From the NCBI GenBank assembly GCA_043228905.1, contig JBHGNT010000014.1, forward strand, positions 18,290,001 to 18,354,000: a stretch of 64,000 nucleotides of DNA. The letters are read 5' to 3'. The notes beneath the pieces are model-generated. The model did no database searches and was not told where the DNA came from. It saw only the letters and a program-made list of their open reading frames with translations. This document shows positions 1 through 15,162 of the stretch, piece by piece. The translations under genes were made by a program, and so were the position numbers. Within the stretch, counting starts at the first letter, position 1; each line of letters opens with the position of its first letter. Origin of the DNA: Azolla caroliniana. Its lineage: Eukaryota > Plantae > Polypodiophyta.

Positions 1-1804
1 GTCATACCTTTGAAAAGTTGAAGGCAAATTAGCTTATTACTTAAATGCCACAAAAAAAGAGGTAAGTATGAATGACAAAGAAAAACAAGCGTATAAACTT
101 CTCTAAATAGGCAAACGTGCCCTAGAAGATCAAACCAATGAAACATATGGTTGCAACTATGATACAATGGGACGATCCTCTAGCTATGATATGATGGGAT
201 GAATGACATAAAAATAATTGTATAAACTTCTCTACATAGGTGAATGGGGCCAATAAGATAACAATGATGAATCATATTGTTGCAATTGTGTTACAATGGG
301 ATTTCCAAATGGTTATCTCTTTTTGCATGGCAGGAATTTGTTTGTCTACGAGAAAATCAAAGTTGTATTGAATGTGGGATTGAAAAAATAAGAGTATTGA
401 TGTCTCTATGAAAATAAAGCTCCTTCCCTTGTTGTAGAAATGGAAATCCACAAACCCTAAATAATGCTTAAATGTTAGAAAGTGAGGGCGGTCATGTTGA
501 CCCATCCAAAGTTCCATGAGACTCTTGTAATCTTGAGCTTGAGGAGTTCCAACTCTAACCTTCGATGCTTCCCTATGATAGTTCTTATTTTTTTGAATAG
601 AGGGTATCTTATTCTTCTCTTGTGGTCTTGGGTGTCCATTATCCTTGAGTTCTTCGATCCCTTCAAAGCAATCCCTTTCGGTGACTTCATTTCCCTATTG
701 TGCAAACTATTTCACCTTATGATAGTTGTAAGGCATGTGGGGTGTGGGGGATACTTAGGTCAATGATGTGGCATAACTATGTCACATTATTGTGGTCCAA
801 ACCCCTCTTCAAACATAAAATAGTATCTACCTTGGATATCATTGTGCATACATATATTTTAGCTACATCCTTCTCACATAGGTAAGATAGTTGATATATC
901 ATGCTAAGAATCATTACTCTCTCCCGAATTGATGTGAAGACTCAATAGGTACATTTTTTGTCAATGCTCACACATAAGGATATGCAAGATTTGCACCCAT
1001 GTCCCAAGCGTGGATGGTGAAATCCTCATGGGAGAGCTAGAGAAAAGGGTTATCGTTTATAAATAATCAAAATATTAAAATTATTCTCGTGGTATGTGAA
1101 TAAATAAAAGTGCACATCTGCCCTATTGGTTGTCTTATTAGGAGTGGAGGCATGAGGCACGCATACATCAAGTCCCTGTATTGTGTGTGATGCTTTTGCA
1201 CTATTCCTTTGTGTTGAACACATGATACAATTTTACAAGAAATAAGATCAAATTGATGAATACTTTCAAAACATTGAGTAAATGTCTCCAATATTTGTTG
1301 TTATTTATGTCCAAATGGCATAGATGCTTGACAATACGTGACGACTTTTACAGCTTGAAACAAACATTGAAAGATTTATAAAAGTATAAACATCATAAAC
1401 AAAACTGATAATGATTTTGGAGTAAAATGATGTGCAACGTTATGCCACTCCCTGATGCCATAACATGATGCTACAAAATCTAAGACCCCTTTGAAGGAAT
1501 ACAATAATTTTGGGAGAAAAAACACATGGATGGGGGTTGGACGGCTTCCTTTAAATTCACATCTCAAGCTACTCCCAATCATATTGTTCTCTCTAGGAAA
1601 AAAGAACCTCTATCCTTTTTTAGATGGTACACACACATTTTTACTAGAAAATGTGGTAGTTTTTTTATAAGGTAGAATTTATATGGAATTAATGCTGATT
1701 CATATTATTGATGTATTCTAGCACAATGAAAGGCTATGTTATGCGACAATGGACATAAATTGATGGGCACATTGGATCTCAAACCTCGATTATGTAGTTT
1801 GGTG

Positions 1805-4303
1805 TCAAACTTGGACTTGGTTTCCCATAAAGGTTTGTCCGAATTGCCAATTAAAGGGTGCTACATTATAGGAAGTAACAACATGACCATGGCCCGTGGT
1901 TACTCTAAATGAGAGAGATTGCCCAACTAAGACCGAGTTGCATTGCCAATTTTGGCCCCAATTTCGAGTCATTGGGATCCATCCAGTGTTGGAACCTCTC
2001 ACAAGGACATGACTTATGTCCCCACTTCCTCCAACATTTGTAATCAAAACTAAATTGAAATATCTAAATCCATTTATGGTAAATCGAATGCCTCCTTCTC
2101 GTTTACAAGGAACCCTGCATTAGAACATACCTTTATGTAAGCCTTATCAATAACTCAAAAGTTCATCATATTGAGGTATTTACATCATGCATCTACTTGC
2201 ATTACAAACAAAATGTCACCCACATACATAATTCAATGAAAATGTGTGTAGAGTCTTTATGAAGTTGACGTAACCATGTGCATCAATGCTAGACTTAGTG
2301 ACAAATTAAGGCTTCAATTACATGACACACTCTATTAAGAGTTATAGGGAACTAAGACGTACATATTAAATTACAATTCCTACATAGGTACATTTAATAT
2401 GTGTTCGTTGGTAGGTGTCAAAATTACAAGAATGTATGTGTTGTGCTATTTTGTTGTACATAGAATATGGATGGATGGGATGTGTGTGGTAATGACTTTG
2501 AACAACATTGCACAAGTCATGCGAGCGATTGGCTAAAGACCCCCAAAAATCAAGATATTTGGCATTGTAATCATTTCAGTTTATTTAGATTGGTTGTTGG
2601 AAATGTACCCTAGTCTTTTTAGTATCTTTTTAGTTTATAAGTCAGGTGATTATAGTTTTTTGGGAGACGTCCTCTTTCCTTTAGATTTAATAGCATCATA
2701 AACTAAAAAAACACTAAATCCTTTAAAATTTTCAATGTTATCTTAGACTTACGATATAAAGAAAAGAATGTTTTTTAGAATTTACGGAGTAGAGCCATGA
2801 AAATTCGAAGTTTTCTTAGTAAGCTTTATGGTTACCTACCTAGTATAAATATTAGAACATGGAGTAAACTTGCGAGAACTCCCCCCCCCCCCCCCAGTGT
2901 AAAGGTGCCAAAATATAGTGGTGATCGTGTGGTGCTTACCTTCGGTAGATGACAGGGATGATCCCAGCCTGATAGTGTGCTAGTTTGAGGAAGGTAGGCT
3001 CGGCCATGTCAAAGTGTCGACGTGGGGGGTTGCACCAACCACCATTGTCTGATGCCAGGGCCCAATTGGGTGGACAAAAGTTTGTGGCCGTGACGATCAC
3101 TGAATTCATGGGGCCTCCCACACACCACTCAGGATCTGCCCAACACTTTATCTCGAAACATGCTCCACAACTCTCCCCTTGGTTGAACAAAGCCGTACTT
3201 AGTGCCACGGTTTTTGTCCCATATCCTTGGGCATATAGATCTCCATAGCCACATGCTCCCCCTACTCTCGTAACGACATGCACATGCACAACTTATATTG
3301 GTTAATCAACACTTGAACCTTAACTTCCATAGGTCTACTTGAACCTTCTTGAATCCATCATTACTATTTCACCTAAAACTAGCTAAATTCCAACATTTAG
3401 TTTGTGTATAATGGATACAAAGCATGGAACAGTTGTACAAAAAAATTGTGGTGGACTTGGAAAATACTTAACACTAATGCAAGCTTAATTAGCTATAGAT
3501 GTTTGTCAATGTGCACAAATTTGGTTGGAATGCCCACAAAAGTTCATTTTTATAGACAAACAAGAGATTATACCATCTAACATTCTAAATGTATAATCAC
3601 TCGAATCCATCAAAGTATGACATACTTTTAAACTAAGGCACACCGAGTAATCTTGCTTAAGAATATGGAGTCACACCCAGTCATCCCATCTAGAAGCATC
3701 CAAATATATAATTTATGTTTTCCACAGATTTAGTTGGAGTTCATACAACCCCTAATGTGGGCTATGTTCTTGCAAAGTGCTTGCATCATCCAACATAGGA
3801 ATTTGTGTACATTTAAATATAACCTTATGTTGTGGGTGCTCATCATCTCAAGGCTATGTTTCTTGCCCTAGTAGCACACTAGGAGTTATTCGTAATGAGT
3901 CACTATAAGCTAACAATATGTATACAAGTATATCCCATAAATCTACTTGGCTATTGATTATGGAACCCATTCCATTGATTGTGATTGCAATTGAATATTA
4001 TTAGATTCAAGATTAGAAATCAATGCGGGTTAAAAATAAAATAGCATGAAGATTAAAAATCAATGGAAGCTTAAAGTATGATGAAGGCTTGGAGATTGAG
4101 AAGATTATACCCATGGTTCCTGATGCATCACTCCCACCATAGAAAGTTGCATGAGCTTCTCTCCACATCATATGCACACTTGGTGATGGATGATACATGT
4201 AGTGATGATGATGATGATGAGTTGATCCAAAAGAGGCAGAGCTTAACATGATCATGGAGCATGACAATATCATGGATAATGATAATAATGCCTTGATCAC
4301 CAT
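1805..4303 (-). CDS. EXPA: Alpha-expansin (EXPA), 3 exons: 4303-4111, 3261-2940, 2114-1805; about 274 aa
   Basis: Signal peptide, then [15 protein letters not shown]|[42 protein letters not shown]|[41 protein letters not shown] introns in phases 1 and 2 at the usual EXPA positions; the joined frame is open to TGA at 1807-1805. Confidence 0.97.
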
Positions 4304-10300: not shown

Positions 10301-11741
10301 TGTAAGATAAATAAGTGAGATCGCTCATGAATCATAGGATAAAAGGGACTAAAGTTGTGTACAAAAGGACATTTTAACTAATGGAGTATATTCTTTTTGG
10401 TGAAGTCATAAAAACATGACCTGACAAATGTCACTAAACAAAACTTCCCTCTATTTGGATGTGTATGTCTATTGGGACTATGGCAACGTTACCCATCCTC
10501 GGCAATTAGCGACACTTTCTCTATGAAGCGAAAAGAGTTCGTTGCACCTTGTGTATGTGTATAGTTTCATCTTTGCTTGATTTCATGTGTCATGATTTAT
10601 CATACTTCGAATGCATCTTATGCGTTTTACACTTGTCTTAACTATTGATTACTTTGTGTTCTCTCATTCTACCCTACTTGGTCAATATTAATTGACATTA
10701 GCTTTATCCAAGAAAATTACCTTGGTAGTCCATTTGAACTCTTGTATTAAACTCAAGCATCATTCTTCAATGGGCCACTAAAAATGAACAAGGTAGAGAC
10801 AAAAATTGACCATGTTCTCACTTACATTTATAGGTCAACGTGGCCTCCAAGTGCATACATTGATTAGATATCCTACTACCATTGAAGATTTAAACTTTGG
10901 TAGCATAGAAATTTGGAACTTTACTAGATTTTCAATCAACAATGAAGATTGTTAAACAAAATATTCAACCCTAATTACTAGATACAAAAAGCTCTGACCA
11001 ATTGGATACATTGTTCAACTTCGTCCTACCGATATGGTGTTATTTTTGGCATTGTCCCTATACATGCGACATTGGCTTCCCCTTTTCCTCCTTAGAATTG
11101 CTCCCTTTTTTACGGTCAGACAATATATGTAAAAGTTTCACTTGCACACATGCACATGCACAAACAAAAAGTTTACCATCCACACATATTATTGCAATCA
11201 AACAACATACACATAGCTAATGTGGTCGACATAGAGAAATAGGGCAAGATAAGGGAAATACTTTAACACAAACACACCATCCTTCCCCACACAAACACAC
11301 ATCATATATGTACACAAGCTATATATATAAGTACCATGACCTAAACTCCCATGCATAAAAACTCAACTAATCAATTGGGGCAAAACTTAACCGCAGTATA
11401 CATACGCATCTTACCTAATTATGATGGTTTACATCTCAACTACCTTCCCAATTTCCTAAGGCCAAAACATGCTAACATTTTCTTGCTCAAATTGGGTTGC
11501 ATGCTATAATTGATATGCCTTTGAAGGCAATTTAAAATACTTCCAAATCAACAATAAAATGAATCCAATATACAAAATGAAAAATATTGTGTTTAATATA
11601 TAACAAAGTGTCGTTATGTGTACTGAAATTTACATTACAGTCAATCCATTATGCAAAATGTACAAAACATGGTTAAATTTAGCATCAACGTGTTATTATT
11701 TTCAATATGGAAGAGTTTGAAAGAGAACAACATCAATTGGC

Positions 11742-13234
11742 TTAACTGTTGGCACTGACTTCAAAAAATGTCCCACCAATTGGATAAGAAAGGTGGTATG
11801 TTTTGGTAAAATTGCGAACACTAAAATATCTTCGGTTATTTATAGTCGCAACATTAATTTTTGTTTCCTGCTTCAACAAAAAAGAATTTTCAGACAAAGT
11901 GTTTTAAGGGCCTTTGGGATGTTTAAGTTTCTTTCATCAACAACACAAATTTTTTGTATAAAAGTGTTATCAGGGTTCTCGAATGTTCAATACCTTGATC
12001 TCAATATATGCTTTAATGATTTCATTTTAAATCTAGTAGGGGATTAGAGATACCATGAAAGTATAGTGTATGTATCCAAGGGGTGGTGTGTGTCAAACTT
12101 GGAATACGTTTGTGCAAGGTTTGTGAATTGGGTAATTGGTGCTGTGCCAAATTTATATAGTTTTAATGGCATTACAAGACGTCCCTCTCCCTACATAGGC
12201 ATATGATAGGTAGAGGAGACTAAGAAGTGTTGTAACTAAGTGGATTTTACATACAATTAATATAATTGTGTGCTTTTACCAAAAAAGAAGAAGAGAGAAT
12301 ATAATGCAATAGATATTTTATCATCCATGATGAGGCCAAATCAACGTATAAACTTGTATGTGATTCCTTCCTAAGAAGGGGGCTTACTATGCAATAAAAA
12401 CTCCTGATGTGAAAATAATTGCATGAACATATATGCTCACCCATCATGGTGAAAATTTGAGTATATGACACTCACATTATCATGGCCGTCTAATATGTCA
12501 TCATATTTCTAGTGAATTACCTCATATTTTGAGCATGTGATAAGAAAGTGATATTTGTCCTCCACTAGGTTTTCATTGTATACCTTGTATATCTTCATGT
12601 TTGCGTGATGATTCCATGATGCTACCTCAACACCTAACTTATGTGAGCAAGGTTAAAGAAGTGTTATGGTTCTCCAAGATCCAAGGTTCATGGGGGTAAT
12701 GAGATGTGATTGGATATGTTCTCACATTTTTTCCTTGCATTGGGGCCAATCTTGGGGGTTAATATTTGCAATGTAATATGCCATTTTTGACATTTTAGCT
12801 TCTTGCCACTTTACCCTTAGTGCATGTAGTAATATATCCTCAATGATCACATACTCCCATAGCATCACATGAGAGCTCCAATAAATCTTACCCATCTCTT
12901 AAACCATTTCATAATGTCAAGCACCCAACCAAATAAGAGGAATTTGTTCTTATCAATTTTTTGTACCTTGAATCCTATGCTTCAAGCTTGTTTGGGCACT
13001 CTATGATCATGCATTTCATGACTTTTGTGATATGCTTGTGTACTCCTTGCATGGCTAGCATCTCTATGGGCTGAGCACCTATTTCTAATAACACGATAGG
13101 ATTAGATGTTGAGGGTTTTACCCCCAATTATCTAAGTAGAAACATTTTTTGGATTTTCTCTATTTCATTCCATGCAAAGAGAGTGCCACCCCATAGTTCC
13201 ACTCCAAAATGTAACATTTGGACCACCGTTGCAT

Positions 13235-13276
<42 letters not shown>

Positions 13277-14967
13277 ATGAAAGATCAAAATATAATAGCG
13301 ATGAATTCCAAGTGGAGGAGCGGGTCCAATGTAGGGCACATTTTCAACACCAAGTTCCCAGATTTCTACATTGCATGATCCAAATTAGCCAAGGTAAGTG
13401 AAAAATCGTCGATTACCTATCTTATAAGCCATATTGAAATGGAAAACATTGGAAAACCATTTAGATGCTTCTTACAAATTACAGGAGAACACCAAAATAC
13501 ATGTCCCTAACATATTCAAGACATATTTATAGTGAACTTGTCGGTAATTTATGAAAATAAATGACAAACCTCTAGATTGATTTGTGATGAACCATTGCAA
13601 AGAAAAAACATTGGATTGAAGTGGGATTAACAAATTTGAAAATACAAGAAAAACACCACATTGAACTCTCATGAATTAATTAACAAAAGAACACTTGATT
13701 GAATCGAGATAAGCCACTTGTTATGAATATAAATTTTGAATTTGGATGCACCAATTGACAAATAAAAAACAAAACAACCACATTGATTTGAGATGAACTT
13801 GTTGAAAAAACACATAGTAGGTTGAATTGGGATGAACCAATTGAAAAGGAAAAAGACACTAGATTGGATTGGGATGAATTGGTTGTAAACGGAAACAAAG
13901 AGATTGAATCAAGATGAACCATTTCCATAAAAAAACACCATATTAAAGGATATTGAATCAGTGGTTCCAATTTAAAGTGCAAAAACACCGAATTGAATTG
14001 ACATGAATCAATCGGAGAAAACATAGGAACATTGATTGGATGGAATTGGAATGAAGAATTAAAAACTATCGTAGACATGGACAAGTGGGAGGAATTAAGA
14101 CAAGAGAGCAAAAAACACAATGGAAACTCAATATTTTTACAACAAGAAGACCAAGAAATTGAATCAAATAGATTTTTTAAAAATCCAAAAAATAAATAAA
14201 ATTGAAAAGACATCCAAAGAAGGAATTATAAAAGAAAAAATGCAACCAAAATCATCCCAAAAATAAAAACAAGGGTTGGGAGTTGAAATTTTGATCAAAG
14301 GAAACTCAATATTTTTAAACAACAAGACAAAGAAATTGAATCAAATAGATATAAAAGAAAAAATCGCGAGAAAAAAAAGAATTGAAAAGACACCCAAAGG
14401 TGGAATTAGAAAAGAAAAGAAAAACATCCAAAAAAGTGCAAGGGTTGGGAGTTGAAATTTTGATCATTGGATAGATACAGAGAACGAAAAAAGAAAAACA
14501 TTATAAGAATTGGGAGGAGAGGGAGTACCTTTGTGGTGATGATGATCCCCTACTAGCTCATCATGAGGGATGTTGGAAACAACCCAATGGATAATATTCT
14601 TGACCAAGGGATTTTCCGGTGACCTAGCATCGGGATCGACTATCACAAGTGTTAAGAGTGCTCCCTTGGGAATGCGCTCGCTCTTTGTCACCGCGACATG
14701 AGGCCTTGTTTGTGTGAAGTTCCTAGGGAGAATCTCCCCCAAGCTCACCACCTCTTGCTTCTTCCCTTGAGGAAAATCAAATGAGAGGCTTATGCTCACA
14801 CTAGGGCCATCTTCATAGGCATCCACCCAATCAGGCTTGACCGTGCCCCAAGCAAGCTTCGCTCTATCGAACCCCGGCGCCACCGTTGTCGATTCGGTGG
14901 CAGAAACAATGGTGGTCGTGGTGATGGCAAGGAGAGCCACCATGGCCACCCACCAGATAGCCACCAT
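11742..14967 (-). CDS. PEBP (phosphatidylethanolamine-binding/RKIP-fold) protein with N-terminal signal peptide; 3 exons: 14967-14529, 13365-13274, 11867-11742; about 218 aa
   Basis: Exon 1: MVAIWWVAMVALLAITTTTIVSA...LTLVIVDPDARSPENPLVKNIIHWVVSNIP...HHHHK. Exon 2: EIWELGVENVPYIGPAPPLGIHRYYILIFHQ. Exon 3: ETKINVATINNRRYFSVRNFTKTYHLSYPIGGTFFEVSANS*. The PEBP motifs (DPD, HW.V.NIP, Y.GP.PP.G.HRY, R..F..R.F...Y.L..P) are all present and the GT-AG junctions keep frame. Exons 2 and 3 are not in the ORF track. Confidence 0.92.
13590..14465. repeat. Degenerate roughly 30-bp tandem array plus a roughly 175-bp duplication in PEBP intron 1
   Basis: Recurrent ATTGAATTGG(G)ATGAACCAATTGAAAAAAAACAC-like units. 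14122-14298 resembles 14301-14465 (both end in AAGGGTTGGGAGTTGAAATTTTGATCA). Confidence 0.8.
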
Positions 14968-15109
14968 CTTCTTCTTCTTGACTTCGAACACTCTCTTGGG
15001 GAACACTCACTTGGGGTAGATAGTTCTCTTAGCTCCTTCTACTCTTCGTCTTCAGCCTCAACCCCTTTATATACATATAGAGGGAGATCATGACACCATT
15101 ACACACACA

Positions 15110-15162
<53 letters not shown>

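Follow-up and report, generated by a model that had tools for sequence, protein, structure and literature searches.

The PEBP proteins of plants have been studied almost wholly as cytosolic or nuclear regulators, namely florigens, antiflorigens and regulators of seed dormancy. Canonical MFT, FT and TFL1 proteins are about 175 amino acids (aa) long, lack an N-terminal targeting sequence and are encoded by four exons with middle exons of 62 and 41 nucleotides (nt), and the evolutionary schemes in use cover these three groups together with the bacterial-type SMFT. The latter, the "fourth clade," is YbhB/YbcL-like and is thought to be derived from a prokaryotic transfer (PMC12812895, summarising Bellinazzo 2024 and Burton 2025; PMC8793217). 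In bryophytes and lycophytes, a large survey found no more than one MFT-like clade, conceding that divergent members had possibly been missed (PMC8408984). Secreted PEBPs have been listed from animals and one bacterium only (PMC8793217), and for PEBP4 secretion has been reported (He et al., 2016, as cited in PMC8793217). Here we analyze a PEBP gene found in a 64,000-nt stretch of Azolla caroliniana contig JBHGNT010000014.1 (the window, to which all coordinates refer). Unlike the canonical genes, it has three exons with a 92-nt middle exon and encodes a protein of 218 aa that starts with a 23-aa hydrophobic leader, and it belongs to a separate lineage of seed-free plant proteins, below referred to as S. 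With a probability of roughly 0.75, we take it to be a working gene whose PEBP-fold product enters the secretory pathway via a signal peptide, is glycosylated and reaches the apoplast or vacuole, the pocket binding a ligand or partner.

The gene lies on the minus strand, with exons 14967-14529, 13365-13274, and 11867-11742 providing 146 codons, one split GAA codon, 30 codons and 41 codons, followed by TAA at 11744-11742. Its features, including the flanking untranslated regions (UTRs), are as follows.

15066-15073, minus strand: TATA box TATATAAA, about 30 nt 5' of the transcript-contig start, read from the sequence
14968-15040, minus strand: 5' UTR of about 73 nt with zero upstream ATG, from contigs and sequence
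14899-14967, minus strand: predicted signal peptide, 23 aa, core VAIWWVAMVALLAI, V at -3 and A at -1 before TES, from hydrophobicity
14529-14967, minus strand: exon 1, 439 nt, ending in phase 1, with the leader, PDWVD core start, sequon N83-F-T, DPDAR, NIIHW and His4 loop
14721-14713, minus strand: N-F-T of the first sequon (RNFTQ)
14637-14623, minus strand: DPDAR
14598-14584, minus strand: NIIHW (in KNIIHW)
14544-14533, minus strand: HHHH
13366-14528, minus strand: intron 1, 1163 nt, GT..AG, phase 1, joint 13365->14529 in X6, X7, X18
13274-13365, minus strand: exon 2, 92 nt, encoding (E)IWELGVENVPYIGPAPPLGIHRYYILIFHQ and carrying the GxHR pocket motif
13309-13298, minus strand: GIHR
11868-13273, minus strand: intron 2, 1406 nt, phase 0, bridged by contigs X6 record 16 and X7 record 23
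11742-11867, minus strand: coding part of exon 3, 41 codons and TAA, with sequon N-F-T and TYH
11813-11805, minus strand: N-F-T of the second sequon (RNFTK)
11801-11793, minus strand: TYH
11573-11741, minus strand: 3' UTR, contigs ending at 11573, 11612, or 11628

The start codon at 14967 stands in a good context (AAGAAGATGG, with A at -3 and G at +4), and both introns have regular splice sites: AAAG|GTACTC..TGTAG| for intron 1 in phase 1, and CAG|GTCTCT..AAGCAG| for intron 2 in phase 0. The Pfam domain PF01161 is recognized in exon 1 with 29 bits at a cut-off of 24, and more weakly, with 19.9 bits, in exon 2 taken separately. By tblastn, the window contains this PEBP gene alone, with no second copy.

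The gene is spliced and expressed. Logan contigs from four runs were aligned over positions 11500-15100, and in X6, X7, and X18 the contig depth, substantial in all three, is restricted to exons (11573/11612/11628-11870, 13279-13367, and 14529-15031/15040). The joint 13365->14529 is present in X6, X7, and X18, with CT..AC on the plus strand corresponding to GT..AG on the gene strand. Exons 2 and 3 are bridged by two contigs (X6 record 16 and X7 record 23) with 2 letters between the aligned parts; hence, the second AG of the AAGCAG acceptor (11867) is used, which yields the 218-aa form. The transcript contigs start at 15040 (X7) and 15031 (X18), that is, upstream of the leader and about 30 nt past the TATA box, and, since the 5' UTR has no ATG, the leader begins with the first AUG of the mRNA. 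An earlier sequence-only reading of this DNA had proposed an intact three-exon PEBP of 218 aa, which is borne out by the exon-only contigs and by both splice joints; the features it listed, i.e., the leader ..IVSA|TES, RNFTQ and RNFTK, DPDAR, KNIIHW, TYH, and the His4 insertion, are all read in the minus-strand sequence, and transcripts starting downstream of the leader, which it had named as counter-evidence, were not seen, as the contigs begin upstream, at 15040 and 15031. The fourth run, X17, behaves like DNA of a relative. In X7 and X18, two contig variants per run cover 14529-14757 in exon 1, differing from the window at 1-2 and 5 positions, respectively, which suggests two expressed alleles, homeologues, or close paralogues.

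The three exons entered the searches, the tree, and the motif work as separate pieces, not as the joined 218-aa protein. A HMMER scan of 1.84 billion representatives with exon 1 as the query yielded 61 matches at E<=1e-3, the top ones being leader-bearing proteins of seed-free plants. The S relatives come from the ferns Adiantum capillus-veneris, A. nelumboides, Pteridium aquilinum, and Ceratopteris richardii (KP509_35G043800, KP509_34G008300), the horsetail Equisetum bogotense (UUW44837.1, deposited as "mother of FT"), the lycophyte Selaginella moellendorffii ("PEBP3-1," and "TF1-like," alias "MOTHER of FT and TFL1 homolog 1"; EFJ36245/XP_024515723), and the liverwort Marchantia paleacea (KAG6543109.1). 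The nearest named relatives of the window protein are those of ferns; for example, the Pteridium protein is 70% identical to exon 2 and 56% identical to exon 3, each exon taken alone. In these searches, no S member was found in seed plants, hornworts, or mosses other than Sphagnum. S is an old PEBP lineage of land plants, with members in liverworts, lycophytes, horsetails, and ferns.

A word-index search with exon 1 gave only two matches, both genomic read-through fragments in metagenome contigs, with 99% and 86% identity. One relative, P0002 (L002/L003 from metagenome contigs ERZ1034381 and ERZ1034399; 86-90% identical), has KNIIHG, i.e., Gly for the conserved Trp, and NHHH for HHHH, and may be a diverging paralogue or an orthologue from a sister species. 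Exon 1 of the window gene is 93.0% identical to that of the relative L002 (87% identical), compared to 81.4% for the adjoining intron, and the ratio of nonsynonymous to synonymous substitution rates (dN/dS) for this pair is 0.29 (Nei-Gojobori, 143 codons); the gene is under purifying selection. These data bear on the possibility that the gene is a decaying or functionless lineage-specific copy, as might be surmised from the lost proline of DPDxP, the odd His4 loop insertion and the Gly replacing Trp of the H-W motif in P0002. We deem this scarcely credible, given the intact frame over three exons, the canonical splice sites in use, the substantial contig depth in three runs, the dN/dS value, the better conservation of the exon than of the intron and the recurrence of DPDAR in the Marchantia and Ceratopteris members.

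The phylogenetic position of S was assessed with an unrooted maximum-likelihood tree built from 177 columns in 68 rows under LG+C20+F+G4 (support from 1000 ultrafast bootstraps and from the Shimodaira-Hasegawa-like approximate likelihood ratio test). The 16 rows of S, the window protein among them, form a group with support 100/96, and the 18 canonical MFT/FT/TFL1 rows, with the window protein outside, form another one (95/94). A starred branch (98/92) has on one side the canonical proteins, some leader-bearing MFT-like transcripts, and chlorophytes, and on the other side S, a second lineage described below as L, Klebsormidium nitens KFL_004640060, Sphagnum BDL97_04G049400, and the non-plant rows. 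According to the approximately unbiased (AU) test, uniting S with MFT/FT/TFL1 as one clade costs 44.4 log-likelihood units and is rejected (p=0.006), although this grouping was named after a quick tree had been seen, which weakens the test somewhat. Nesting of the window PEBP in MFT is rejected on the basis of the tree and the AU test (p=0.006). Four MFT-like proteins from Logan and EukProt transcripts (P0189, P0052, P0168, P0080) have hydrophobic N-terminal leaders or anchors, are otherwise canonical, and branch at the base of the canonical group.

The S profile matches FT, TFL1, Hd3a, and CEN at 1e-35 to 1e-39 (FT at 8e-39), Drosophila CG7054, Trichuris Tm16, and mammalian PEBP1 at 1e-24 to 1e-33, and bacterial-type PEBP chains at 1e-4 to 1e-2, with no match to E. 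coli YbhB/YbcL at <=0.01. Membership in the SMFT/YbhB-like "fourth clade" is rejected on account of these weak bacterial-type matches as compared to 8e-39 for FT. The proposal of a separate lineage outside FT/TFL1/MFT is backed by the values for S (100/96) and for the canonical group (95/94), the AU test (p=0.006), and a differing gene structure conserved from liverwort to fern; the window protein nests neither in MFT/FT/TFL1 nor in a YbhB-like clade by the tree, the AU test and the S-profile matches.

The database names of the Equisetum (UUW44837.1) and Selaginella members, as well as FT being the best structural match, could be read as a sign that these proteins are divergent MFT-like cytosolic or nuclear regulators whose N-terminal extension is irrelevant or untranslated. 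This is very unlikely, as the AU test rejects S plus canonical proteins, the exon-intron layout is a different one, and ferns and the Sphagnum-type data also contain canonical MFT genes (Adiantum raddianum, Psilotum, P0214). Moreover, the leader lies within the transcripts and is opened by the first AUG, and the key position occupied by Trp, Tyr, or His in canonical proteins is Ile, Val, Leu, or Phe in S.

For comparison of gene structures, annotated proteins were threaded onto genomic loci, with Cucumis MFT as the canonical example; the contigs of the leaderless proteins P0027 and P0106 are transcripts and thus carry no exon-intron information. The exon lengths (nt) are 439/92/126 in the window gene and, among other S genes, 364/92/126 in Ceratopteris 35G, 388/92/135 in Selaginella PEBP3, and 403/92/129 in Marchantia paleacea; in the L lineage and on its side of the tree they are 334/92/162 in Ceratopteris 06G and 511/92/141 in the leader-bearing Sphagnum fallax 17G. 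The middle exon has the same length, 92 nt, in the window gene and in five further genes belonging to S or L. All S/L genes, like the window gene, have intron 1 in phase 1 and intron 2 in phase 0 directly after ..F.Q. The phase-1 intron lies at about the place of MFT intron 3, which is also in phase 1, adjacent to a five-residue insertion "EIWxx"; the other two MFT introns are missing from S/L genes, and the intron after F.Q is absent from MFT. The claim that the first two canonical introns are lacking and that an extra intron follows ..IFHQ is accordingly upheld by the exon lengths of Cucumis MFT (198/62/41/224) as compared with the window gene (439/92/126). The Klebsormidium gene KFL_004640060 (L013, DF237413.1, gene 801-3903) has exons of 153/151/101/126 nt; its phase-1 intron coincides in place with that of S/L genes, and a phase-0 intron lies three codons downstream of the S/L one. 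Its introns and its place in the tree suggest, but do not prove, that the S/L lineage is older than land plants.

The L lineage was uncovered by a second profile search, seeded with two leaderless matches. It includes Ceratopteris KP509_06G000200 (L011, CM035411.1, gene 1001-1812), Adiantum GOP47_0016791, two A. nelumboides proteins, and Cryptomeria japonica LOC131068785 (annotated as "uncharacterized"), with protein identifiers P0138, P0140-P0143, P0027, and P0069, so that its range covers ferns and a conifer, with relatives in Sphagnum-type data; the Klebsormidium protein is a possible further member. In the L profile search, L members score 250-310 bits, compared to about 148 bits for the best MFT proteins. 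L together with Sphagnum proteins forms a group of 13 rows (99/99), and S and L together form one of 29 rows with weak support (80/72), L being the group nearest to S. Common to both lineages are the three-exon structure, the length of 92 nt for the middle exon, and the motifs "TQxxPH" and "EIW." They differ in that L proteins have no leader, carry 0.15 sequons per protein, keep DPDAP, have Phe, Trp, or Tyr at the key position and occur in a conifer. L seems to be missing from the published FT/TFL1/MFT/SMFT schemes.

Sphagnum has at least four loci encoding PEBPs with long hydrophobic N-terminal extensions (L007 in S. fallax CM038210.1; P0072, P0074, P0111, P0123, P0028). Three Sphagnum loci group with L and not with S, and the fourth, BDL97_04G049400, lies near S and L without a firm place. 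As these three leader-bearing loci group with L, leaders have either been gained more than once or been lost in L.

As for the origin of S, "ancient or horizontally acquired" was the earlier suggestion; of these, the former part is supported by the spread of the clade, the shared phase-1 intron, and the plant sister lineage, while the latter is disfavored. An ancient origin is preferred because S occurs in a liverwort, a lycophyte, a horsetail, and ferns, because one of its introns, in phase 1, is common to S and MFT, and because its sister is a plant lineage without leaders. Acquisition from an animal, fungus, or other eukaryote with secreted PEBPs would fit several observations: in the unrooted tree, S and L share their side of the starred branch (98/92) with opisthokont and amoebozoan rows, multi-domain secreted PEBPs of animals have high scores with the exon-1 query (P0005) and the S profile (P0070), and the feature search in the ESM Atlas leads to animal PEBP4 clusters. 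Still, such a transfer appears highly improbable to us in view of one gene structure conserved across liverwort, lycophyte, horsetail, and ferns, with the phase-1 intron at about MFT intron 3, of the leaderless plant sister with the same structure, and of the related Klebsormidium protein. Among solved structures, the nearest ones both in sequence and in fold are plant FT/TFL1. Besides, the non-plant rows make up one side of a starred branch (95/92), and hence the tree allows all plant rows to form one clade.

The window protein has a leader of 23 residues ending with ..IVSA before TES; its N-terminus reaches a Kyte-Doolittle value of 2.71 over 10 residues and has at most 24 non-polar residues in a row, and the PEBP core starts at residue 44 (PDWVD, residues 45-49). 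A leader is present in 14 out of 16 S rows, where 30-47 residues with a 10-residue Kyte-Doolittle maximum of 2.1-4.2 precede the "IPxWVD" core start; rows of L and of the canonical group have their core start at residue 13-20 and reach a maximum of <=2.0. The S proteins are also rich in N-x-S/T sequons, with 3.1 per protein on average, the corresponding values being 0.15 for L and 0.44 for canonical proteins. The column of the first sequon (N-x-T before xxRPH; RNFTQTRPH in the window protein) has it in 11 out of 16 S rows and in none of the 31 other rows, and the second sequon, RNFT, is common to the window protein, Marchantia, Equisetum, Ceratopteris, and one transcript. From the conserved leader, the sequon enrichment, and the transcript start, we infer that the window PEBP is probably secreted.

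The hydrophobic N-terminus might instead serve as a signal anchor or as the presequence for an organelle, leaving the protein membrane-tethered (in the lumen of the endoplasmic reticulum (ER) or Golgi, or at the plasma membrane) or organellar. Long hydrophobic runs in some members, such as Equisetum with the Kyte-Doolittle maximum of 4.2 and the window protein with its 24 non-polar residues in a row, speak for this, as do the 60-100-aa N-terminal extensions of the leader-bearing Sphagnum proteins, which are more anchor-like. However, the hydrophobic core of the window leader is only about 14 residues long and is followed by a polar TTTT stretch and V-x-A at -3/-1, the classic signal-peptidase pattern, and the N-terminus has no Arg/Ser-rich amphipathic presequence; we therefore regard a tether or an organellar location as unlikely. 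The sequon enrichment points to the ER lumen under the signal-peptide and the anchor readings alike.

The pocket motifs D-P-D, H-W, and G-x-H-R-Y are kept across S. In L and canonical rows, DPDxP always has its proline, but in S this residue is P, R, V, F, or Y, DPDAR recurring in the window, Marchantia, and Ceratopteris members. The position of FT-Tyr85, TFL1-His88, and the MFT Trp is Ile in the window protein (KNIIHW) and I, V, L, or F in S. The run of four His was found only in the window gene and a close relative. As a stand-in for the window protein, we considered the AlphaFold2 model of the Pteridium homologue P0007, which has an overall predicted local distance difference test score (pLDDT) of 86, with 88-98 for core residues 35-195 and 45-51 for the unstructured leader. 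Its best match among PDB structures is FT (1wkp), with a template modeling score of 0.89-0.90 and a root-mean-square deviation of 1.9 A.

Taking these data together, the window PEBP might work as follows. Translation would begin at the first AUG; the 23-residue leader would take the protein into the ER and be cut off after VSA; N-glycosylation would follow at N83 and near the C-terminus; and the protein would be exported to the apoplast, or possibly the vacuole, where the intact PEBP pocket could bind an anionic small or phospho-ligand or a protein partner. As the D-P-D, H-W, and G-x-H-R-Y pocket is kept, binding of an anionic or phospho-ligand or of a partner protein outside the cytosol is the most likely function, and the protein may act as a carrier, a buffer, or a signal or, as other PEBPs do, inhibit a protease. 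For S proteins in general, leader cleavage, glycosylation, and destination are likewise predictions from sequence.

Several points weigh against secretion or against the placement of the gene. Two S rows, P0004 and P0013, have no leader and start at the core, perhaps as truncated gene models. The window protein has zero cysteines, making the disulfide stabilization usual in many secreted proteins impossible. The signs of secretion were computed from hydrophobicity, the -3/-1 rule, and sequon statistics. The pocket with DPDAR may differ from the canonical PEBP pocket. The label of the runs as RNA is a guess, with exon-only coverage and spliced joints fitting RNA or cDNA. In the tree, exon 1 alone represents the window protein, S and L group together with weak support (80/72), and the deep placement of S relative to chlorophyte and non-plant PEBPs is tentative.

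Some further observations concern the non-coding parts of the locus. Intron 1 contains a tandem duplication (14118-14297 and 14296-14466, about 175 nt, about 83% identity; a secondary blastn match). In intron 2, a dispersed repeat at about 12105-12346 has a summed X17 depth of 341-1778, compared to about 5 in the flanks, and many partial joints occur there. A perfect (GA)18 array at 13237-13272 lies at the edge of the intron 2 donor (CAG|GTCTCTCT... on the gene strand), and a (TC)23 array at 15113-15159 precedes the TATA box by about 40 nt.

The evidence points to two further related lineages, S and L, beyond those covered by the existing schemes. No description of a leader-bearing plant PEBP clade was found in the searchable literature, with several key papers outside its reach, and the same literature yielded nothing on an Equisetum bogotense PEBP or on a Klebsormidium PEBP or MFT; hence, S is apparently an undescribed branch, and "possibly undescribed," as the sequence-only reading put it, remains a fitting description within the same limits. 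S adds a new branch to a well-known family, at a predicted new location, and is relevant to the evolution of the PEBP/florigen family. If S proteins are truly secreted, the PEBP fold has been recruited to the secretory pathway in plants, as in animals (PEBP4); this would also offer a testable entry in the tractable Ceratopteris, Marchantia paleacea, and Selaginella, and "MFT-like" database names in seed-free plants would need rereading. A bolder scenario, in which an extracellular glycosylated PEBP serves seed-free land plants as a signal or ligand carrier in the cell-wall space, a secreted counterpart of the symplastically moving florigen-type proteins lost or replaced in seed plants, and S and L constitute a fifth ancient streptophyte PEBP family, is speculative and seems to us rather improbable.

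Comparison with the known systems places the window PEBP as follows. With canonical MFT/FT/TFL1 it shares the Pfam family, the fold (by the homologue model), the D-P-D, H-W, and G-x-H-R motifs, and the phase-1 intron at about MFT intron 3; it has TYH instead of the FT triad L/IYN, and, together with other S proteins, differs also in being leader-bearing and sequon-rich and in the variable proline of DPDxP. Like SMFT/SFT/PYBHB (AT5G01300), it is a plant PEBP outside FT/TFL1/MFT. Yeast Tfs1, the carboxypeptidase Y inhibitor (1wpx), and mammalian PEBP1 demonstrate that the PEBP fold can bind or inhibit another protein, and Tfs1 is a detectable match both in sequence and in fold; however, both proteins are cytosolic, and their likeness to the window PEBP is a functional analogy only. 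By such analogy, our best guess would be an extracellular or vacuolar ligand binder or protease inhibitor. Finally, the secreted PEBPs of animals (mammalian PEBP4, nematode Tm16, and the arthropod "conserved secreted" PEBPs) have the same combination of a signal-type leader and one PEBP domain, Tm16 and Drosophila CG7054 rank with the better sequence matches of the S profile in the PDB, and by language-model features the ESM Atlas clusters nearest to S protein P0066 are those of animal PEBP4 and "conserved secreted protein"; this last finding is no more than a lead. Nevertheless, S groups with a leaderless plant lineage and not inside a non-plant group, and its likeness to the animal secreted PEBPs is best read as parallel recruitment of the fold to the secretory pathway.

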